In this document: positions 47,800-64,000 of the stretch, piece after piece
Layout: the number at the start of each line of letters is the position of its first letter
Numbering within the stretch: the stretch's first letter is position 1
Origin: Trichoplax adhaerens
Taxonomy: Eukaryota; Animalia; Placozoa
Assembly (NCBI RefSeq): GCF_000150275.1
Contig: NW_002060947.1
Coordinates: 7,363,880-7,427,879 of the forward strand
Direction: 5' to 3'
Length of the DNA stretch: 64,000 nucleotides
The notes under the pieces: model-generated
Told to the model about the DNA's origin: nothing
What the model saw: the letters and a program-made list of their open reading frames with translations, nothing else
Database searches by the model: none
Made by a program: the position numbers and the translations under genes

Positions 47800-50700
47800 A
47801 ATTTGTTAACAGTAGAGCGTCGTTTAAAATCCACGACTTGGGAGGTAATGTAGATTTACAGTGGCTAGAAGTTCCATTGGGGCAATTCTGGTAAAATTAC
47901 TGCCACAGGAAACTAAGTAAAATATAATACAATTACAGAAACTACCAAAAATTATATTAATAGCAATAAATATTAAATTCTTTGATCATTTTATCAAAAG
48001 CTGTATCTTGATAGTAAATATTAGCTTGCTGCCTAGCATTTTATTTTCAAAAGCAACTTACAATGCTTCGTTTTCAGTATTTGCTTTACCAGATTGCTGA
48101 TTATTTTTCATAATGGGATCAACGACCATAACTTTCTCAACCGTGCTATACAATATTATAAATGAATAGATGATTACGTAAATAATTAAATAAATCTAGT
48201 ATTGGTATAGCCCTAATGATAATAGTTTCGTAATATCAAATTGAAACATAACATTGAAAAGCTTACGTAATTTCCTTCTTAGAACTTTTTCGAGAAATAG
48301 TGCTTCGAGTATCTACATTTGATCCATTGGTCAACCTAAGTATATTATGAAGTATATAGATATTATGCAGTTATTTTGCTAAACTAAAATAGGAAGAAAT
48401 CGTAAAGACTTACGATAACGAATCTTCCTCTTCATCATCGTCGCTATCATCTCCATAATGACTCAAGCTAACTTCCATGATAAACGAACCTCTTGTTATG
48501 TCATTATCATAATCATTTTCTTCACTATCAGGTTCCGTTTCCTGCGGTTCTTTCTTACTAATATACAGAATGGATAGTTAACGAGTAATGCAAAGGAACC
48601 ATTAAACTTTAAATCAAATGATAAGTCATAGTGATCGTATTTGAAGCACATCGAAAGGTTGCTAAACGCCAAATTTTCACTATGTTAGAACATACACGTC
48701 GCTATCCGCTCTTGGAATTTGGAAAGAATTTACAAATGATGTCATCTGGTGACCTCTCATCATGTCTCTATTTCAGTAAACAGATTGAACTTCTTATTTT
48801 AATAGCCGTAAATCGATTATAATTTAAAACGCATTATTACGAATAGCACTTACAATGTCGTTCGTTTTGTTTCCCCATCATTCTAGATATAAATAGAAAA
48901 TAGTTTGTGATACGATTATCAATACTGTCTTACTGAATCTTGGATTGCGAAGAAGCAGCATTCATTTTAAAATAATTCGTTAACCTATTGAAGTCGTTTA
49001 TTTATCAGAATAAATAAACTTACGATATAATCCCCAAAAAGATAGAAAACAGGTGTAATGATGCCCTAAAAACAAGATGTAATAGTATATACGTTTGTCA
49101 TTGTCGATAATTCTATATCAAGTACTTTGCTTCTGGCCTCATTATTCGATATTGTCGCATAAAAAATAATGAAGAACTTAGGTATCACTACTAATCATTC
49201 AAATGATAATTTAGTCGATAAATCTACGTCTACAAATCATATCTATAGTAGTAATATTGCAAACATAGAAGATATTAATATTAGAGCTAATCAATTAAGA
49301 GATTATCTTGAAGCGCTGTTTCAGCGAAAGCAAACTAATGAATTTGATACTGATGACAATTTCAATGCAGTTATTCATACTTATACTTATTATAAGAGGA
49401 TGCTTACCTGTACTGCAATTAACACGTTAACTAGAATTTCTAAATTAGTATATTTATAGGTGAAGTAGATTGCAGCAACAATTTGATCACTGGCAACGAT
49501 TAATGACCATAGGGATAGGAATACTAATTTAAGCCTAACAAATACAGATTTAAAATGATTAACGCATGTCATTAAGCAGAAGGAATTTTCTTAACGACGT
49601 TCTAAATGTTACTAACCAGAAGCGATTAGTAGTTGAAACAATCTTGTTATACCGAACCATCTCACAAATTAAAACGATTATAGTAACCTAAGTAAAGCAG
49701 CATTAAAGATTAATTAAATATTATATGGTAAATTCTGCGTTAAACCTTTGCTCTTATATAAATATCAAATCTATAATATCAGGTACAGTAGCTTCTATTG
49801 CCATTACCAAAACCATCAGCCCAGCTGGGCCGATAAAAGCCATAACCATAGAGTTAATAGAGCTTAACCAACATCTTAGAAAGATTTGCATCATATTAAT
49901 TGCATATATACATCTCATTGTACTATGGACTTTTATAGAACTATTGCCGAATTTCAGTATAGGTACTGAATTAAACTCTCTTACATTGAAGAAGAAATGT
50001 AGCTTTGCTTCCATACACCAGCTGCAACTCCAGGAGGTATCATAGGAATAACTGGAAAAGCAAAATGGAATGTTTAAATTGATTTCATAATGAATAAATT
50101 ATAATTAGTATACCTAATACTCACTTAGTGCTAACGGTAAAGACCATTTCAAGCTAATGGAATAAGTATTTAAGGATAGAGATAAATACAGATGGGATAT
50201 AATCGGGATAAGAAAAAATATGACCAAGGACGTGTAATGAGTTGCTATAGTAATAATGAGGCAAATTACCTAAATGAAAATAAGATAATTGTAAATGCAT
50301 TAATGGTCGAAACTTAGCAAATTTGATAGAATTTATTATCTAGTTACAACCGTTAAATTATTTTGACGGTAATATCTTAGTAATCACATTAATGTATTAG
50401 TAGCATAAAGTATAAATTGACGATCGTTTCATCTGCCAAATTAGCGAGAACACCTAAATTAGCCATGTTATCAAAAATTTTATAGCTAGAAATCTACATT
50501 GTATTCCATTCATGGTGAATTAACTAACTCTATCTGCTGAAGCCAACTGAGGCTGTAAAGCTCCGAAAAATATTAAGCCTAATGACAGCAAGAAGAATAT
50601 TGACAAGCACAAAACCACTCCATCGTACTTTCTTCGACGTTTACTAAAGGAGGAAAATAATCGATGAAAATTAAGATAACGGCTATTTGCATCATATAAG

Positions 50701-53700
50701 TTTGTTACTTTATAGTAATGTAAGTAGTATTATTTAACTAGCAATTAGACATTAGGGAGATAATGAGTATCAGATACTTACATGATGCCAATAATACTAA
50801 GTACTAAAGTAAGAAGACTGCCAGCTGCTCCTAAGCCGAAGCAGATCAAGGTCGCACTAGAAACGTAACCTTGAACTTCTATTTCTTTCTGAAATCAAAA
50901 GATTAATGAGTAGAAGATGTAGTAAGATGAACAAAACAATGTTTCTTTTCTCCGATATTTTGAGTTTAAAATTAGTAAAAGTCGCTGGATTAATACTGAT
51001 ATTAATGAACTTATATGCACTGGATAGCAAAGAATCATGATAATCAAATTTTAAAGTAAGGATTGGAAAGGAATAGGTATTGAATTTAATTCTTGATATG
51101 GGTTTAATAAATAATTACGGACCTCAATTGAAGTGGTTAGTAAGCTAAAAACTGTTAAGTGGGTGCATTGGCAGTCGGTATGAGTTGAATTTGTCGACTT
51201 GATGCGGCAACCATTGTCAGACCAGGATTTGCTGCAATATTGAAGAAGTTGTTAGTCGAACGATAAGTTAAACCATGTACCTATACGTTGTAATTGAACA
51301 GTATATCTACTAGGATTTAGTTCTTCTACCTGGTATAGTTCCAGAAGCAACAAACTGGCTGGACGATTTTAAGATCAATAGGCTGAAAATAGATATTTAG
51401 AGTGTTGAATGGATAGCTGGATACTAAAATGGGGAAAGTTTCGTACTACTATATATATATACAACTTACACCGCTATGCTGGAAATGCAATATAACGGGT
51501 GGATCAAGGATGAAGCTCATTTCCGGAATAAAAGAAGCGGATAAAACATCTGACTTCATGACCGTCATTTTGCCTTTCTTAACTTGACTGTAGATAGCAA
51601 GAAATTTTAATGAGCTCGACGAAAATGAATTTAGATAGCAAGCAGGACTGTATCAATTTAAAAATCAGAGAGGATATGTAAACGATGGACGCAGCATCTG
51701 CAGAATCTTAGGAAAGAATATTAGTTTAATTATTTAAATTTGATTTATTAGATATGATATAGTCAGTCAATTTATTTAAATAACACAGCTAAAAATACTA
51801 ATATTTAAAATTGAAGGAGTAAATAAACGAAGGACACAAACATGTAGAATATGAGGAAAGAATACCAGTTTATGTATGATTGAATCGTGGATATCTATTT
51901 TAATTAATTTGATTTATTGGATTTAATATAGTTAGTCAATGTAGTTAAGTAACGGTAGTAGCCATGCTAATATTTAAAATTAGAGATAGAAAGTAGATGA
52001 TCAATATCTATGGAAACCAGAAAAAACAACACTTACGCCTAAGGATTACGATTGTCAAATTGAGTTTGTTTTATTTAATGCACGGCAGCGACTATAATTT
52101 GTGAACTCGAATTGTTATTATAGAATCTGAACGCAATAAAAACTGTATAGCAATCATAAAATTACGTTAACCTTGTTATATGCAATAGTAAAGAAAAAGA
52201 ATAGTAAAAGTGTTCTTAATATACTATATTAATCAACAAGCTTTAATCACCAACTGTTATAAAGCATACATAACAGTTATAAAAGGGAATTATATAAAGC
52301 ATTCAGAAAGACGATCTCTCTTCACCTAATTACTAGCTATTGTATTGTAGGAATCCTTCTTATAATAACTCAAAAAAAACTTTTAAGTTTGTTATTAGAA
52401 CACATCCGCTAATCAACTTGAATTTTGCGAACCTGAAATATATTTGATCCTGCCCGAAGGTCCAGAGAGATTGAAGTTTCGAGAATTTGATGCCAATAAA
52501 GCTCTCTAAATCGCCTATAAATAAGAGTTTACGGCGATCATTATTGCTCTCGATTGATTCATTTATTGTCTAGATCGCTATTCCAATTACAGATGTAGCA
52601 ATCGTTCTAGTAATCACTTAATTGATGTTATCGCAAGCTGGAGAAATACGCTCAATCTTGGCATTTAGATATAAATAATACCTGAATCTCCAGTAAAGAG
52701 AGATGAAGGTAAAATGATTCTAGAAGTAGAGTCTAATTGTTGATTTGCAGGAAAAATGAAATCCTGAGATTGATCTCTAGCAATTCTCTGCACTTTCAAA
52801 TCTGCAACAGAAGTGATAATAATTTAGTTAATCTAATTGTGCTAAAAATTTACACCTACAATAAATGGCATGTAAAATATCAAATTCCAAATCTTACAAA
52901 TATTTTCTTGTGTGATTTGTGCTATTTGCGTGGGGACAAGGGTCTGACTATATCTTTCAGCTACAGAATTTAAGTTTTGTATAATTTCTGGAATTTGAGC
53001 ATCAGGAATCTGCCAAAGTCGTCGGTTATTGCAATAAATAGCAAGATGTTAACAATTCATCATGTATTTGCAAATTTAAGTAGATTATAATTAAGTATGT
53101 CCAGCAAAATGGCAAAGATTATATCTAATTGCTATCTAAAGTCCAGTTTTCTTAGGATTCTTGAAAGATTGTTATTATAATCTCGAATTGAAGAATTCTA
53201 ATGCAAACCTGTCGCTCTTGAAGATAATTCCACGAATCCTTGTTTTGTTGTCGTAAAATATTACTCGCTATCGTTGTATAGTTCTGTCATATTCATTATA
53301 GACATAAAATATTGCCGATTTAAGATTTAACCTGTTTATTTTGTTGTCTACAGAGAGATATTCTTCTACTGATTTATCTTACCCGCAATACAGTTTCCGT
53401 TAGTAACGATGGTGTTATTAACTTTGAGCCAAGTATTTTCATGATGATCGAAGACTCAATCAAGTTTCCTTGAATATTTATATTTGACATCGAAGTCAAC
53501 TCAACTGTTGTGCCAATGTCATTAAATAGAACTAAATCATCGCGACCAGGTAAAATATCCTGGATTTATTAAAATGAATCATAAAAACAATAATCAGCTT
53601 CTCTATTGCTGTATATGTATGACTAACTTTTATAGCGTAGTTTCTCAATTTTATAGGATTATTGACTTTTTAACTATAAAATAGAGAACTGCAGTAGCAG

Positions 53701-56700
53701 CACTGATCAATTTTACCTTTAGAGACTGATGTAGAACCAGTAAGGAACTACTTTTACAATTGGTTAGATCGGGTTGTTGCCATGATGGCAGATTACTGCT
53801 ATTCCCAGGCAAGCAATATCTTGATGCATTACCTATGCAGATGAAGCCAGTAATAAAATAAGGATTCATAACAGTAAGAAATTGAACAGTAATGGCTTTA
53901 ATTGCTCCATAATTTAGAGCTTTTGTCGTTATTTAAAGTGAGCTATCACCTTTTAGTATTATATTAATTTCAAAACTATCTTTAAAACCAAAGTTTTAGG
54001 TAAATTTTATGATTACCTAGCATATTATCAGGGCAATCTCTAAAGTTATAACTGTTGGCAGGTGTTAATAACCAGTTAATTTGATCTTGTCTTTCTGCTG
54101 GACAAATACTGTTGACATCTGCATTAATCAAAATCATTATACAAGAGATGTATAAGTCGTAGCAAACTTTACTAGTAAGCAAACTATGTTGAAATGATTA
54201 CCTGAAGGAAGAACTGTAACATCTGCTTCAACGCTAGAACTACCTAATATATTAGCAACAAGGCATCGAATTCGAAGCGGCGAAGTAGAAGCTAATAAGC
54301 CACTCATTGTTAGCTTAGAAAGAGTGCCTTGTGTTTCGATCGTTGTTTGTAAATCTACAAGAATAATATCTATAGTAAATACGAAATATCAGAGAAGATA
54401 GTGTATACGTGTTTTACCCGGCACGATATTGTTTCCGTTTCTAAGCCAAGTGAAATTAACTGGCGTAGCAATGAAACCCTGCCCTGTATTCAGTGATGGA
54501 ATCGAACATTGCATCTGAGCATTATTATTTTCGTAGATTGCAATAGAAAATAATTGAGGCAAGGGAGCAATTTGGACAGCTATCAATCACGAAATAAATA
54601 AAAAGATTCGTATGAGCTTGCTTGTAATTGGAGTTAGATGTAAGATAAGTATAAAGTAGTAAAATGCAAGGCTGTATGATTAATATCAACAATCATAACT
54701 CATGCAAACGTATAAATAGTAGCAAAATTATTAAATTGTAGAATTAAACGGGTTGCTCGAACGTATAAGACATCTATATCTTGTGAATTGATTAATTCTC
54801 TGTAAATGTTTGTTATTAATAAAGCGGCAACGGTGATTTTGGGATTGCAAATCATGCAAAATAGAAGAAATGATAATTAAGGCTAACGCCTGGATATGAA
54901 TTAAGTACAATTTACGCTCATGCATAGTTATAGATTACTAAAATGTGCATGCACAAAATGATAACTGCTATAGCTTTCATAGATAGAAAAGATCTGAAGT
55001 AATTACTAGGGCAAATATTATAATGCGATCAAAGGATTACATGATAAGAATAAAATCTACGTGAGAAATTTTGTAGTTATGTTTATACTCTAAAATATTG
55101 TGGAACATCATTGAATCATATTTACGGCCGCTATTGATTTGTTCAAATCTAAGTGAACAGTAAGCACAGCAGCAGTATTTTTACCCCTCTTTATAAATGA
55201 GGACAATCAATTTCTTATAGTATTAAAGCTTATAAGGAGTTAAAAATTAGCTTAAATCCATACCTTGTTGGCAGGAACTACCTTGCCATCCAGGTCTACA
55301 CAAACAGTTAGTGCTAGATGTAGTTCCATTACAATAACCATGAACGCAAGGGTTATTAAAGCATGGGGTGATAACTGAGGTAGAAAATTAATTAATCATA
55401 TATTAATCATGGGTGGCAGTAGAAATTACAGTTATTATTTTATATAGCTCCAGTAAAACTTCAATTCCACATTAACCTGCTATGAAATATAAATTTTACT
55501 GTTGGATGGAACTGACTAGGTGTATGATGAAACTAACTATCGTTGTATTAATATTAATTAAATAATTTAGATACTCAACTTGAATTTTAAACAGGAGAAT
55601 TATCATAATTTGTTAGGCTAATTTCTTGATTAAAAAATTCATTAGATAGCTATCTACCTACATGTTTCACATTTAATACCAGTATAAAACTGACTGCAAT
55701 TGCAGAAATATTCATTAATGGTATTCGTACAAGTGCCATTATTTAAACAAGGATTAGATGAACATTCATCAATTTCTAGACGGAATAGAACAGGGACACG
55801 ATTATTAAAAGTTTTACATCTCCTGAAAAGATAATTTCTCACGAGTAAGCTAAAATAGAAGCACTTGATAATAGTACTATACCAGTTTCACAATATGCAC
55901 CAGTCCATCCAGCTTTACAAGAGCAAGTAAAAGCATTTATTAAGTTGTTACAGCCCCCATAGACACATGGACTGGATAAGCATTCATTGATATCTATATC
56001 GAATTAGTAACAGTAACGATTTAAACTCTCAATTTATAAATTTATATGAAGCGGTACTTAACTAGATATTTGTTGCCATTAAAAGGGATTAAGATAATTA
56101 ATTTAAATGTTTAGATCATGGTGTAATAGTAATTCTATTGCACTTGATTAGATGTAAGCCAAATTGTCATATTCAAATTAGACTTCATCTTACCTGTATT
56201 ACAAAATTTTCCTGTCCAACCTTGGCTGCAATTACATGTAAAACCGTTAATTTTGTCTGTGCATAGACCTTGTAAACATGGGCTCGAACTACATTCATTT
56301 ATGTCTGTTCAAAATCATAATTCAAAATTGTTAAAATGCTATTGATTATGAAAATCCTGGTCAGAAGGAGGGCTTATCTTAAAGTAGCTGTAATAAACTC
56401 TCAAACCTGTTTCACATTGAACACCAGTATATCCAGGCAAACAATTGCATTGATATTTATTTAATAAATCAAAGCAAGTTCCATTATAGCTACAAGGACT
56501 AGATATACATTCATCTGTGTCTATTAATTAAAGTGAATAAAATTAGTTATAATTCCATTCTTTTTCTAGAGGCTACATAGAATAAAAAAATTATCATCAA
56601 AAACTTGGCATTCCAATTTGACATTTAGGTTAATTACAAACAGACTATAAGAATTTAATTCGTCCAAGAATGAGTTTTTTCATACGAATAGCAAGAAACT

Positions 56701-59700
56701 GTAAAAATAGTATCGTACTTACTTATCGCACAAGTTGTACCTTCCCAGCCTGGATTACAGGAGCAATTAAAATAATTTATGAAATCGCGGCAATTTCCAT
56801 TTAAGCAGGGGGTTGAACTACATTCGTTGATATCTGCATCGGAAATAGAATAAATTATCCTATCTATCATAAGGAAATGTTAGTTTATGGTAGTATTAAT
56901 CGAGGAAACTGACCAGTCTGGCAAGTCTTGCCAGTAAACCCAGGCAAGCATTGGCAAATAAATCCATCCAGTAAGTTAACACACTGACCGTTAAGGCAGG
57001 GGCTGGAGTTGCATTCATTAATTTCTAGAATAGCGTAGATTATTAGTAAAATTACTGTAATATAGAGGTACATCGGGTTTTGGCCGCAACATAGATAAAC
57101 CTTTACTTCTTTCTAAGCGCTCTGACACGAAATATTAACGCCTAATAGTGTAACCATTAAGCACATCCTGTATGGCCTAAGTAACTATTGATCACATTAT
57201 AGTATTCTATACGTAATAGCTATATCGAATCCAAACTGTTATTTGTAGTAGTAGGTTTGATAATGCTATAAATAAGCTGAATTTACTCATTGGAATTTGT
57301 TAATTTTCTTTTACAGCTACGTAATACTTCTATTACTTCTGAGTGCTCGAAAGCTAAAATATTAATAAAATAACAAACCGCAAATATATCGAAATCTTAT
57401 TGCATTTTCCTACAATTTGTTTACACTCGTACTATAAACTCGTTTATTTTCTCATTAAATAAATCATAAGCATCTCTATTATGCGAAAAACCATTTGATA
57501 TCCAAGCTCTTGCTAGAACTACATATCCTATTATTTATGTTACCGATTCCGAAGTAATAGATAATACCTTGATCGCAAATGAATCCTTCCCAACCTGGCT
57601 GGCATGAGCAATTATAGCTATGGACTAAATTATTACACTGGCCATTTTTACATGGATTGGAAAGGCATTCATCCACATCTAAGATGCATCGAAGTAGGCA
57701 ATTTGAAAGGATGTAAATGACATGAATTTAAGGAACTGTATTCAAAGAGTTATTTTAATAAATTGACTTCACTGATTTCCCATAAAATGAATAAGATCAA
57801 ATTTGTTGGTTTGCAAGTTGCAAACACTTATGCTTTAGTTATTACTTGTTTTAACTAACCTTCATTGCATATTGTGCCTTTAAAGCCATCGAAACATTTA
57901 CAACTAAATTGATTAATTTCATCTGTGCAATTTCCATTAATGCACGGATTAGATAGACACTCATCAATGCCTTAAGTAGAAGTAAGAAATTATTTGTCAT
58001 TCTTACTAATTAAGATAAATAGAATATTCTACTTGACGTAAATTTTACGTAGTCAATCTTGAATTACCAGAAGTACAAATGGCCCCAGTCCAACCTGAGA
58101 AACATTGACATGAGTAACTATCCACTAAATTACTACAATTTCCATGGATACAAGGGTTAGAAGTGCATTCATTGACATCTAAGAGAAAGAGACCGCAGCA
58201 ATATAAGCAATAATATAATCTCCCTGAGCTAATAATAAATTTCTTTACCTGTATTACAAACTAAGCCAGTATAACCAGAATTACATTGGCAGCTAAATTT
58301 ATTTATGCCATCAGTACAATTTCCGTGAATACATGGACTTGATAGACATTCGTCAACATCTTTGTAATAAGAGTAAAAGTATTTATTTTATCATTTAATA
58401 ACTAGAGATGCTTATACTACATATTCAACTTAATTATCGAATCCAATGGATAGTTACTGGTATAGCATTATCAAAGAAATGCTATATCTCTGTCAGTATG
58501 AAAATAATTAAGAAGACTTACTGATGGTGCAAATACTGCCTGTCCAACCAGATCGACATGTGCAATTATATTCGTTTAAAAAGTTATTGCAATAGCCATT
58601 AATGCAAGGATTTGAGCTGCATTCATCAATATCTATATGGAGCAAGCAGTGAGAAAAACAGGGGATAATATAAAAAAGACAATAAAATGGCAAGATACAC
58701 CAGTTAAAATAATATAATATTTTAATTTTACTTCATTTTTAAATCAAAATTTGTACCATCATTGCATATATTTCCTGTAAAGCCAGCATCGCATTGGCAG
58801 GTATAACCATTCACTTGATCGATGCAATTTCCATGAATGCAAGGATTAGACTGGCATTCATCGATATCTTGGAGGAAATTTAAACAAAAGATCAATTATA
58901 GGTAGACATAACGATATTAATATTTTCTTAGCTAGACTGATTGAAACAATTACCTATTTCACATCGTGTTCCAGTCCATCCAGTAGAACATGTGCAATTA
59001 TATTGCTTTAATAAATTATTGCATTGACCATTTAGACAAGGGCTGGAAGTGCACTCGTCAAAATCTGCAAAATAACAAGATATATACCCATAGGATATCG
59101 AAATAGAAAGTGAATTGCATTCAAGAAAATACTTCGCAGTAAAGCCGAATTTTTAAATGTGATCAAGGTTAAATCATACTAACCGTCATTACAAGTTTTT
59201 CCGGTATACCCGATAAAGCAATTGCATTCGAAACTATTAATGCCTTGGGAACAATTTCCATAAATACATGGGTTGGATAAACATTCATCAATGTCTGCAA
59301 AATTGAATGTCATTACAATTGGATTCAAAGATCGAGTGTATCATATCCTATATTAAGCTGGCGCCTACTAGTAGAAACTAAAATAAAGCAAAAAATGCCA
59401 CACCTAGGGTGCAATGTGTTCCATTATATCCTGGGCTACAAATACATGTATAGCTATTAATATTATCCTGACAGACGCTGTTATTTCCACATGGTGAAGA
59501 TAAGCAATCGTCAATATCTAATGATAGAGACAAAATTTTGATAATCTTTAATAACCATTTAGTCATCTTTATTAGATAATAGATTACGATGTAGTCATAT
59601 TATAATATACTTGTCTGACAGTTCTTTCCAGTAAATCCAGGAGAACAAGTACAATTATAATTGTTCAGGTAATCATTGCAATCACCATTCTGGCAGGGAT

Positions 59701-62700
59701 TCGATTGGCATTCATCAATGTCTATAATGATAATAAAATGCGATTAGATATTTGACTGGGTGCAAGATTCTATCCATTAGATCATTTAAAAGGCCTAACT
59801 ATGATACAATATTGCTACTTTAGTAATTACAACTACTTAGGTATATGTATAATAGTAAATTACGGTGATTCTTCTCTATGTAAAATCTATCACCGATTAC
59901 TCGACTAGTGCTATAAAGTTACTCTTAATAAATGTGTAGATCATTATTTGACTACATTCGCTATATAGTAAATAGAATTACCTGACTGGCATTGTAAACC
60001 TGTCCAGCCTGTATGGCAACTGCAAATATATGCATTAATTCGATGATAACAATCTCCATTAATACAAGGTTTGGATTGGCATTCATTGATATCTAGAGAA
60101 TTAATAATAAAATAGAATAGCTTGAATACTCGTATTAGCAAATAGTAGCTTCTTAATTAATGGATTGCAGTCTATCCTCCACGTAATCTAGCTAGATTTG
60201 AATTCCATAATATTTTAAGCAGCTTATTTATGCCTTTCTATATTAAAATATTTATGAATGAAAGAAAAAATTACTAGATACGTATAGTAATTGCGGAAAT
60301 TTAATTGTATGCATTTTCGAAGAAATGACCAGCTTTAATAATAGCTACGAAAATCAATATACTAAATAAATCTCGCTAAATTATAAATATTCCTTTTAAT
60401 TAGCGATGCATGGCTATGTAGCTATTGGTCCGATTGACAGATGTAAATTACATTATCGTTAAAAAGTGAGTTAGTTCAACTTGAAATCTTACTGAATTGA
60501 GAAATACCTGGTTTTAATATTAGTCTGCCTTAATCTTATACCTGTTTGGCAGTTGTATCCATCGTATCCTGGAAAGCAGCTACAGTTATAGGCCGCAATT
60601 TGATCATTGCAATTCCCATGAATGCATGGATTTGAGGAGCATTCATTAATTTCTAAAATCAAATAGATAATAGAAGTAAAGGCCTAGAAGGAAGTAATAA
60701 TCACGTTAGGAAGAGATTCAGTCTCACCTTGTTCACAAGTATTTCCAAAGTATCCTGCTTCACAGTCACAACGGAAGGAATTAACTTGATTTTGACATGT
60801 GCCAAAAATGCAAGGACTGGATTGGCATTCATTGATATCTGGAATAGAGTTTAAGTCGACCATTATAAAGGTATAAAAATTAATACACTCGTATCGATGT
60901 TCGATACCTGTTCTCTGTAAAAGACAATTATTAAATTGGAAAAGACTTTATACACTGAATATAACTTCATTACCTAAATCACAGCTAAATCCACTCCATC
61001 CTCCTTCGCATGTACAGTTATAATAATCGATGTAATCAAGGCAAGTGCCATGTTGGCAAGGACTTGATAAACATTCATTAATATCTACAAGGCAAGGAAA
61101 TTTATTAGTTAAAATGTAGGTGAAATCCTTCAATTTCAAGAAATTTCATTTACTGTTTTGGCAATGGATTCCAGTCCAACCAGGTTGGCAAGTACAGTTA
61201 TATCCATTAATGTAATCTTCACACATTGCTTGATTAAAGCAAGGTAGTGAGGCACATTCATTTACATCTATAGTTTATTACCATTTCATAAAATGATGCC
61301 AATAAATTAATGATAAATAGATCTCAATGACGAACAAACTCAGTTTTATCGACTCTGGAGTAAATCAAGTTACTTATTGAGCAAATAGTTCCTTTCCATC
61401 CTGGATCACATGTACAGTTGTAACTGTCTACTATATCTATACATTTTCCGTTGATACAAGGACTGGATTGGCATTCATCAATATCTAAAATAGGAATAAT
61501 TTTGATTTAGAACGGTGAAGAACGAATTATTTTACTTGACGAGAAGCTTTTAAGTCCCATACTTATATTACAGTTGGATCCTTTCCAACCGGAATCACAA
61601 GAGCAATTATATCCATTAATCAAATCTTGGCAGATACCGTAGATACAGGGCGAAGATTGGCATTCATCGATATCTATATTTGACAATTTAGATTGGACAT
61701 CGTGAGTAATTACCCTAGTTTATTTATACGTATCACCAATGAGGTAGGTAGGAGTCTAAAATTTCGATTGCGGTAAAATTTCTAGACTAACCTATATGGC
61801 AGTTGGTTCCATTCCAGCCACCGAAACAGGAACAACTATATTGATTTAAGTAATCGTTACAGAGTCCATTGGCACAGGGATTGGAATTGCATTCATTAAT
61901 TTCTAATTTAAAATGAACGGCATCGGTGAATACATTATCTTAATGGTATTTAGCAAATACAATAGAGCAAGAGATTATAGTTAAAATAAACTATAGAGAG
62001 GGGCTTGGCAAGCTTACCTTCGCTGCAATTGTAGCCTGTATAGCCTGCTGTACAGTTGCAGGTAAATTCATCAACAAAATCTGTACAAGTACCATGAATG
62101 CAAGGATTTGATGCACATTCGTTAATATCTATAGCATAATGAGAAAAATTTAATCAATCTTCCTAGTCACTAGTTACACTTTAAGCTACATTCTCCTGGC
62201 TACATTCCCTGGAAATTAAGTAATCGATGAACTACATTTACGATGATCATCAAACTAGATCCGGTATGAGTTGATAGGGTTCTTCGACCTCAAAGTTATA
62301 CGTAAACTAATCAACGGCAGAAACATGTAGAGAATAACTACTTATTGCTATAGTACATAGGCTTATGTTTAATGCATAGAAATGCATAAATCAATTATTC
62401 GATCCTTGTATGAATAATATTCAGATGTGATTGAAAGTCCTATCATGTATTGCCAATCGTGAAATCATTTTAACAAGTCTACACTGTCAGTATTGCGTTT
62501 ATATCTCACCCGTTTGGCATCGATGACCAGTATAACCGGGATCACAAATGCAAGTTAATGTTGAATTGCCTTCAGTATCGATGCAGGTTGCGTTATTTTG
62601 ACATATAGTCCCACACGTTCTGGTATCTAATTACGACAGCATGATACAATAATACAATAAATCATATATATTTATGATTAATCTATTCAAGCTAATACCG

Positions 62701-64000
62701 TATAAAGATGAATTTGTTAATACATGATTTCATAGCGATTTAGAAATTGTATTATGTTGATTTTTGGTTTTGAAAAATCGAAATTAAAATAAGCGTATTG
62801 TATTAGTTGATCAGTTGCCTAGAATAAATTATTGCAAAAAGTATGATCTATGTTACTTGACTGTAAAATTATTCTAATGAACTATAATAAAAACTGTAGC
62901 TAGTAGAAAGCTACAGAGTGGCCAACTCGACCTCTTATGAGCAAATTCGATGTCAATACTTTATATCTTGCAGTGCAATCTAACCTGAGACACTCATGCT
63001 ACTTTTAGATATTCTCGAAGAGCAGATGATTATTACATGCCATGCAAAAGGCAATAAGCCTCGTACTGGCTAGGGTTTACAGGTTGCTATCTTGCAATGA
63101 CCTACCTAGATGGATCAACTGAAGGTAATTCTCTTCGAAACCACACAGAAATGTTGGCTTTAATATCCAATAACGTGTTAGAATTATTTGACATGCTTGA
63201 TTACGTGTTTCTTGATAGGTTATTGAAGGCGAAGGAAGTTTAACACCAGGACAGTCTTGACCATCGTAGACTAGAGGCTGACCAATAGACGACGGAGCAA
63301 GATCTTCAGGACATACTACAGTTACATTGGCAGGTTCAAGGTATTCTTGCAACGGATAGGCAATAATAATTCTTTGCATGCCTTCAGCAGAAGTATTACA
63401 ATCATCGGATACAAACCAGTGTCGATCAATTTGTAGACCACAGCTTGAATTAGTGATCTGGTCTATATAAGAAATAGGATTGATTGTGCAGCGAAAATCA
63501 TCCGTTGCATTTGCATAGCCAGTAGTTATTGGGTTGGAGCTAATATTTTGAGGAGCACAACTCCTAGATGTCAAATTGGATGGGATAAAAAGTTGTAATG
63601 GAGATAGAATTAAATCTTCATCGATGCGTCCATCACCATCATCATCAATTCCGTTAGGCAATTCTTCATCTACTCGATAATCACAGTCATTATCCAATCC
63701 ATCAGCTGGTTTACCGATGGGTTTACAAATAAGTGATAACGATTGGCCTCCTGGGTATCCTAAACCTGTAGAAGAACCGGCACCATAAACTCCAACGCCA
63801 AAGACGACGTTAGGATCCAGATGATTTAAGGTGATGCTGCTATCTTGAGCTGGTATGGTGTAGTAAGCGACAGAAATATTAGTATTATTCACCAAAGACC
63901 AGGAAAAAGAGTAGGAAGCATTATTTAATAGCAAACCAGTTATCTGATCACTCTCTATTTGGATATAAACATGAATATCACCAGAAAAAGAAGCTCCAAG
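47800..64000 (-). CDS. Very large adhesion GPCR (5'-truncated by the window; exact stop uncertain)
   Basis: [28 protein letters not shown]|TVFSLL (51122-51231), [14 protein letters not shown]...CP....GNASRYC....WQQPDLTNC (53717-54118), Ig domain (54202-54580), 7TM exons 49020-50890 including CWLS...AFIGPA, 27 EGF exons and the large exon 63108-64000. Confidence 0.9.
55264..62627 (-). repeat. Array of 27 EGF-like domains, one per phase 1-1 exon (mostly 111 or 114 bp)
   Basis: Counted by eye. 25 start with the Ca-binding-type D/E-I/V-D/N-E-C consensus or a close variant (e.g. [35 protein letters not shown]); the two terminal repeats lack it. Confidence 0.9.

Follow-up and report, generated by a model that had tools for sequence, protein, structure and literature searches.

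The question raised by a 64,000-nucleotide stretch of the Trichoplax adhaerens genome (G000:C1410:7363880-7427879, hereafter the window; the genome assembly comprises 105.6 Mb in 1,414 contigs) is whether the long series of minus-strand exons at its high end forms one very large receptor or several separate genes, and what kind of receptor it would be. A first-pass annotation of the window, made from the sequence alone, had proposed a single giant adhesion G-protein-coupled receptor (GPCR). The gene described here encodes, in this order, a signal peptide, an IgGFc_binding domain (the head), an Asp-rich metal-binding-like motif, two HYR_4C-related repeats, 27 EGF domains, an Ig domain, an HRM domain, a GAIN domain, seven helices and a putative short acidic tail. 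We consider it probable that this is one expressed gene for a type-I-oriented surface receptor of the adhesion GPCR kind, of approximately 2,400 residues, working by the mechanism proposed below. The gene runs past the high end of the window and the adjoining 20 kb were therefore included in the analysis. Profile and similarity searches of the receptor parts were made exon by exon rather than on the spliced protein; the spliced chain served to check the frame, number the residues and compute hydropathy.

Transcript evidence for a single gene

RNA assembly contigs from four runs (X9, X7, X10 and X12), which belonged to four studies and carried two organism labels, covered the stretch between 49401 and 55400. 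In contigs of all four runs a phase-1 GT..AG junction on the minus strand linked the end of the 27th EGF exon (55264) with the start of the Ig exon (54579), and the RNA depth between 54601 and 55200 was zero in each run. Because this joint was shared and nothing was recorded in between, EGF27 is spliced straight to the Ig exon. This confirmed the continuity from EGF to Ig that the first-pass annotation had had to assume, and removed the short linker exons that it had suspected between 54700 and 55200. The same contigs confirmed each joint through the Ig, HRM, GAIN and GPS exons to the first six transmembrane (TM) exons, TM1 to TM6, and read on into the TM7 exon; the lengths of the exons from GAIN1 to GPS summed exactly to the positions on the X7 contig. 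The RNA places the EGF array and the GAIN and seven-transmembrane (7TM) part in one spliced molecule, and the proposal of one giant adhesion-GPCR-type gene with this domain order was supported.

A constrained search for GT-AG boundaries, which made use of the RNA joints, revealed a single reading frame that begins at the start codon and reaches TM7 after 2,350 residues without a stop; it has 48 correct splice sites and GT-AG at every intron. The whole gene lies on the minus strand and its exons follow the order signal peptide, head, 27 EGF, Ig, HRM, GAIN/GPS and seven helices; the signal-peptide exon lies wholly, and the head exon partly, beyond the window end. Approximately 2,090 residues precede the predicted cleavage site and include the IgGFc_binding, EGF, Ig and HRM domains, as is usual for an adhesion-type ectodomain. 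Hydropathy analysis of the chain showed the signal peptide followed by seven segments, every one of them after the GPS. A head search of representative proteins for an annotated full-length product returned no near-identical protein, the best match being a 614-residue orthologous exon from another sample, and a length-limited search for such a product found only the head-only paralog TRIADDRAFT_54093.

Two further observations were made on the RNA. Some X9 (organism B) contigs ran through the introns at window positions 50334–50643 and 51470–52117 beside spliced ones, which represents either unspliced RNA or library DNA. At position 53559, the first base of exon GAIN1, the plus strand read T in all four runs and under both labels versus C in the assembly. 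This C to T difference turns the first GAIN1 codon from GAT (Asp) into AAT (Asn) and may be an assembly error, a reference strain variant or editing.

Membrane-proximal domains

Among the single 7TM, GAIN, Ig, HRM, GPS and EGF exons, Pfam significance was reached only by GPS and EGF. The GPS exon also matched the GPS exons of eight paralogs (E 4e-9 to 3e-4), and the canonical C-x2-W-x6-W-x4-C-x11-C-x-C spacing was found to be spread over this exon and the preceding one. TM1 starts 27 residues past the predicted cleavage site, which gives the GPS-before-TM1 arrangement of class B2 receptors. Cleavage at HL/T and activation by a tethered agonist are both suggested by the sequence consensus.

The first Ig exon gave a weak match to Pfam Ig_2 (E 0.13), and the best weak matches of the Ig domain were to the Ig exons of paralogs. 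The first half-domain exon of HRM (PF02793) scored 13.6 bits (E 0.089), below the cut-off of 26.2, but the Cys/Trp pattern of the domain was complete over its two exons. The second HRM exon matched the corresponding paralog exons (E 1.4e-4 to 0.07), which themselves adjoin Pfam HRM hits. Exon-by-exon phmmer searches revealed weak matches of the GAIN exons to paralog GAIN exons, with the order kept. From the end of HRM to TM1 there are approximately 297 residues, which falls inside the 280–330 residues reported for HRM-GAIN-7TM modules (PMC12716839).

The seven-helix region

Several observations on this region weigh against a receptor that signals in the conventional way. None of the 7TM exons, searched individually, matched Pfam 7tm_2, even at E 10; this could be because the exons are short (21–48 residues). 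A genome-wide 7tm_2 scan was without a hit at the locus, and the TM6 exon, searched against the genome, matched itself only. TM3 lacks W..EG and TM6 lacks PxxG, both of which are present in the paralog on contig C1414. Because these two motifs and a 7tm_2 match are missing, G-protein coupling may be altered or lost. Retained, on the other side, are CW in extracellular loop 2, GP in TM5, N..QG in TM7, VIC...HY...LY in TM3 and a Trp in TM6, and the best matches of the TM3 and TM5 exons were paralog exons that carry 7tm_2 hits. On these motifs and matches, the seven-helix part appears to be a divergent, atypical family-B 7TM. This divergence makes the G-protein signalling suggested by the first-pass annotation less certain than was assumed there.

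The alternative that survives best, although we judge it unlikely, keeps the same architecture and gives it chiefly a role in adhesion or anchoring, the seven helices being a membrane anchor without G-protein coupling. The lack of 7tm_2 matches would be consistent with this, since five paralogs are present among the genome-wide hits from which this locus is missing, as would the loss of the TM3 and TM6 motifs. Comparison of X9 with the window, in which the intron-retaining contigs supplied the intron differences, points the same way in part: there were nine exon and ten intron differences in the covered stretch, and seven of the nine exon differences change an amino acid, three of them in TM exons, although these numbers are too few for a selection test. 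However, the same comparison gave differences at approximately 0.4% of exon bases versus 1.7% of intron bases, a divergence about four times lower in exons. The GPS and tethered-agonist consensus is intact, the seven helices are present with CW, GP and N..QG retained, and exon length alone could explain the failed Pfam matches. The adhesion GPCR reading is preferred to that of a simple anchor.

Downstream of TM6 the RNA mapping ended at 49401, and the X10 and X7 contigs carry a further 1,160–1,257 nt. Splice scoring of the C-terminal tail yielded candidate exons and no firm chain; the last of these candidates (48557–48410) has an acidic end and a stop codon.

The EGF array

The array was found to comprise exactly 27 EGF exons between 62626 and 55264, the number given by the first-pass annotation, separated by GT-AG introns of 69–543 nt. 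Four of the exons were tested and all matched Pfam EGF models, while the EGF_CA model stayed below its cut-off on single exons. The six cysteines are kept in all 27 domains. A calcium-binding start and the C-x-S-x-P-C O-glucose consensus were found in 25 of the 27 (EGF2–26), and the Asp/Asn beta-hydroxylation consensus in 23, so that cysteines, start and hydroxylation consensus together are those of calcium-binding EGF (cbEGF) domains of the Notch/fibrillin type. The spacing between domains is the same as in Notch. Pairwise identity among the repeats averaged 50% with a maximum of 65%; by this measure of repeat divergence the array is old, and is neither a recent duplication nor an assembly artefact.

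The head exon

The large exon that carries the head is 1,857 nt long (63106 to 64962), of which 962 nt lie past the window end, and is open for 615 codons (L003:1-1845, minus strand). The signal-peptide exon lies 320 nt upstream of it and has a phase-1 donor that fits the large-exon acceptor. The match to IgGFc_binding extended over profile positions 2–297 of 297, with 141 bits versus a cut-off of 25.6. The AlphaFold2 model of the head exon was all-beta with a mean predicted local distance difference test score (pLDDT) of 87. Residues 4–116 of the model formed an N-terminal sandwich resembling 1nc7 (TM1070; VIA-align Z 10.9), which serves as a fold lead only. A Foldseek search with the whole head model returned just generic beta-sandwich arrays (TM ~0.1), and no solved relative was found when the PDB was searched by head sequence.

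In an alignment of 36 sequences, including 35 relatives, the Asp-rich motif was the best-conserved part of the head exon, with nine invariant and many near-invariant columns. It scored 16.6 bits against Pfam Cu-binding_MopE, below the cut-off of 27, whereas the relatives P0053 and P0010 scored 38–39 bits. The pLDDT was low at this motif.

The repeats that follow had been described as HYR-like. No direct Pfam match to HYR_4C (PF23237) was obtained, not even when the repeats were searched by themselves at E 10, and to that extent the description was not supported. BLASTP aligned the two repeats to many HYR_4C repeats of P0164 (E 3e-23 to 3e-7), a protein that itself matches HYR_4C in Pfam (1.2e-14), and residues 454–615 were modelled as two Ig-like sandwiches with Z 6–7.4 to PKD/Ig-like domains (VIA-align). 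Kinship to HYR_4C is thus suggested indirectly, through P0164 and the Ig-like fold of the model. P0164, an ENA metagenome protein of 901 residues, contains twice over the Asp-rich motif with HYR_4C repeats after it. As both recur together in this way, motif and repeats seem to form a travelling module that does not depend on the IgGFc_binding domain.

The join between head and EGF1

RNA was mapped over 49401 to 55400, a stretch that ends short of the splice from the head exon to EGF1. In the X7 contig (9,178 nt), 5,841 nt precede the Ig exon, more than the 4,930 nt modelled for signal peptide, head and 27 EGFs; the remaining 911 nt, either 5′ untranslated region or retained introns, are unaccounted for. 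The lack of direct reads over the splice and the surplus of 911 nt count against the full-length gene as drawn, and the former leaves room for a two-gene reading, with a secreted head protein and a separate downstream EGF-Ig-HRM-GAIN-7TM receptor. Head-only genes do occur in this genome, an example being TRIADDRAFT_54093, one of a tandem set of four on contig C1412. We nevertheless regard this arrangement as improbable. The last base of the head exon is 63106, with the intron starting from 63105, which corrects the donor placed at 63108 by the first-pass annotation; this donor is in phase 1 and fits the phase-1 acceptor of EGF1 at 62626. Its position is kept in the 69%-identical orthologue P0001, in which the sequence past the donor diverges completely, so that it is the donor and not a read-through tail that is conserved. 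A start codon with a signal peptide was looked for between the head exon and EGF1 and was not found, nor was any other domain exon. The X7 contig reaches 2,829 nt upstream of EGF1. Furthermore, a same-strand GPS accompanies such a head at eight other loci, and head and EGFs follow in this order in the C1414 paralog as well. We infer the join from the phase match, the conservation of the donor, the absence of a further signal peptide and the 9.2-kb contig, and retain the single gene.

The divergent 7TM and the predominance of amino-acid changes among the few strain differences might suggest that the gene belongs to an expanded receptor family but is decaying or has lost its function. This is very hard to reconcile with an open chain of 2,350 residues with correct splice sites throughout, spliced transcripts in four studies, cysteines preserved in every EGF and the intact orthologous head exon (69% identical) of another placozoan sample.

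A family of head-capped receptors in Trichoplax

Profile scans of the genome contigs revealed 23 IgGFc_binding exons and 52 GPS hits. For eleven of the 23 exons, spread over nine loci, a same-strand GPS follows 5.6–21 kb downstream, where approximately 0.12 would be expected by chance. Hits to 7tm_2 were present at five of these nine loci, and HRM hits in the right order at two. Same-strand exons of 100–140 codons fill the interval from head to HRM in the paralogs, and those that were tested encode Ig I-set and FN3 domains. The HRM, GAIN, GPS, TM3 and TM5 exons of the gene studied here found their best, weak matches at the corresponding paralog exons, in the same order (phmmer --max), and the TM5 exon matched the corresponding exon in all eight paralogs. 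With tblastn, the exons matched little in the eight paralog loci beyond the head and the GPS, the rest being a few weak hits. The gene is the EGF-stalk representative of a placozoan family with nine or more loci, in each of which such a head caps an HRM-GAIN-7TM receptor; most of the others have Ig/FN3 stalks. The lineage-specific receptor envisaged by the first-pass annotation is accordingly not a one-off, although its architecture is undescribed.

The C1414 paralog (head exon at 11117218) contains a head, 3 EGF domains, HRM, GPS and a canonical 7TM inside 9 kb; its head exon has 667 codons and a weak HYR_4C match. Three further EGF-like exons are present directly upstream of this head exon (L013:1-649, plus strand; G000:C1414:11116001-11116649). 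This may be a receptor with EGFs on either side of the head, or the upstream EGFs may come from a neighbouring gene.

Four tandem IgGFc_binding exons with frames of 637–715 codons and no GPS nearby were found at G000:C1412:787581-801744 (plus strand). One of them is TRIADDRAFT_54093 (679 residues, IgGFc_binding only), and these genes appear to be relatives of the receptor head that are secreted and consist of the head only. At G000:C1396:1298119-1302035 (plus strand) and G000:C1397:482085-486192 (minus strand) two tandem IgGFc_binding exons lie upstream of a single GPS/7tm_2; each pair represents either a double-headed receptor or a head-only gene beside a receptor.

Features of the locus

The coordinates of the gene are collected in Table 1. 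Between the signal-peptide exon and the next upstream gene no further domain-like exon was found. That gene, on the same strand and 7.3–9.7 kb past the window end (L003:7285-9730, minus strand), has by eye the look of a GBP/atlastin-type large GTPase with a long coiled-coil exon.

Table 1. Features of the receptor gene, in window numbering; positions above 64000 lie in the adjoining sequence, and the slash in the GPS motif marks the predicted cleavage site.
Feature	Position	Strand	Basis
Signal-peptide exon	65337-65280	minus	Start codon, classical signal peptide MVRFILFILISILTSSVIP, phase-1 donor
IgGFc_binding (PF17517) domain, in-window part	63782..64000 (domain to ~64645)	minus	Pfam E 5.8e-41
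Asp-rich Cys-containing motif, DNDCD..DEE..N..DDDGDG.IDED	63611..63727	minus	Lies between head domain and repeats
Two Ig-like four-cysteine repeats, HYR_4C-related	63106..63607	minus	BLASTP to P0164 repeats; end at phase-1 donor
27 EGF exons, one domain each, phase 1-1, 111-117 nt	55264..62626	minus	Exon chain; Pfam EGF on four exons
Single 684-nt intron EGF27/Ig	54580..55263	minus	RNA joint; no linker exons
Ig domain, two exons (54579-54418, 54354-54202)	54202..54579	minus	RNA joints; Cys...W...C pattern visible
HRM domain, two exons (54118-54017, 53832-53717)	53717..54118	minus	RNA joints; weak Pfam
GAIN body, seven exons, ~245 residues	51330..53559	minus	RNA joints, exon lengths exact against X7 contig
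GPS motif, CQCTHL/TVFSLL, and presumed tethered-agonist segment	51123..51231	minus	Pfam GPS E 6.9e-10
Seven-transmembrane region, eight exons	49024..50888	minus	RNA joints to TM6; hydropathy
TM1 exon	50888-50782	minus	RNA joints
TM2 exon	50643-50529	minus	RNA joints
TM3 exon	50269-50125	minus	RNA joints
TM4 exon	50051-49985	minus	RNA joints
TM5 exons	49874-49808, 49687-49617	minus	RNA joints
TM6 exon	49534-49408	minus	RNA joints
TM7 exon	49065-49024	minus	Loose contig end at 49407 reads into this exon
Putative cytoplasmic tail exons (48882-48854, possibly 48767-48696, 48557-48410)	48410..48882	minus	Predicted by splice-site scoring with the gene's own introns

Proposed mechanism and significance

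By analogy with adhesion GPCRs in general, the head would bind an extracellular partner, for example a glycan, mucus, a microbe or matrix, and the calcium-stiffened EGF rod would keep it tens of nanometres off the membrane. The GAIN domain would cleave itself and the two fragments would stay together. When the outer fragment is pulled or displaced, the segment beginning TVFSLL would be exposed and would act on the seven-helix domain.

A broader hypothesis, which we offer as speculation with the odds clearly against it, is that adhesion GPCRs capped with IgGFc_binding serve placozoans at the cell surface in recognising microbes, food films or mucus-like glycans, in parallel to their receptors capped with C-type lectin domains (CTLD-GPCRs). 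Reach would be determined by the stalk (27 EGF, 3 EGF or 10–25 Ig/FN3), isoforms that differ in length could arise because the EGF exons are symmetric in phase 1, and the member studied here would signal unconventionally through a 7TM that has lost the TM3 and TM6 switches usually present.

Adhesion GPCRs are thought to convert pull on a long ectodomain into a signal, and the role of stalk length and stiffness is at issue. The gene and its paralogs constitute a natural series in which the same head and HRM-GAIN core are combined with very different stalks, in an animal that has few cell types and feeds by gliding over biofilms. After C-type lectin domains, the head is a second recognition-type cap for placozoan family-B receptors, which lends support to the view that surface recognition was coupled to GPCRs by early animals. 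The interest is limited in that invertebrate adhesion GPCRs commonly have ectodomain combinations peculiar to a lineage and in that the ligand and signalling role proposed here are predictions.

Comparison with known systems

A literature search found no published account of the architecture of this gene, of IgGFc together with Trichoplax, or of an IgGFc_binding head with a GPCR. The head itself has 3,392 relatives at E<=0.001, which occur in amphioxus, molluscs, an annelid, a shark, bacteria and metagenomes, and neither a GPS nor a 7TM bundle was present in any of the best 150. Both results agree with the earlier statement that no characterised adhesion GPCR has this order of domains. The closest systems by head are FCGBP-like proteins with an IgGFc-binding N-terminus, in which this Asp-rich motif and HYR_4C repeats frequently come after the head. 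Unlike the receptor described here, the best 150 head relatives are secreted, single-pass or bacterial surface proteins. An amphioxus head-bearing protein, LOC109480924, is named 'notch/fibropellin-like', a name that suggests EGF repeats.

By its rod, the gene resembles Notch and fibrillin, which have long runs of cbEGF domains with the D-x-D/N-E-C start, the beta-hydroxylation and O-glucose (C-x-S-x-P-C) consensus and single-domain phase-1 exons. It differs from them in having no LNR/NRR, ankyrin or TB domains and in an array that ends in Ig-HRM-GAIN-7TM. EGF domains, partly calcium-binding, are also placed on a GAIN-7TM core in ADGRE (EMR1-4, CD97) and ADGRL4/ELTD1, whose outer fragment is believed to pass on force. 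These receptors have few EGFs and neither HRM, Ig nor a separate head (PMC6626334, PMC8191316), whereas the present gene has 27 EGFs and all three, so that its ectodomain is not the EGF-only one of ADGRE/EGF-TM7 receptors.

The membrane-adjacent order of Ig, HRM, GAIN and 7TM is the same as in ADGRA (GPR124/GPR125, fly CG15744). In ADGRA, leucine-rich repeats occupy the tip (PMC2571103), where the Trichoplax gene has its IgGFc_binding head and EGF rod.

Within the same phylum, placozoans carry 28 CTLD-capped secretin/adhesion GPCRs, which were proposed by Kamm et al. (2019, PMC6321704) to link pattern recognition to GPCR signalling. These likewise place a recognition-type ectodomain on a family-B 7TM in an expanded family, but their cap is a C-type lectin domain, and the IgGFc_binding family is not mentioned in that paper. 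Surveys of invertebrate adhesion GPCRs emphasise lineage-specific ectodomains (PMC2246102, PMC4302439, PMC6900090). As one such variant, specific to its lineage, the Trichoplax gene belongs to a receptor class already known and is not a new system.

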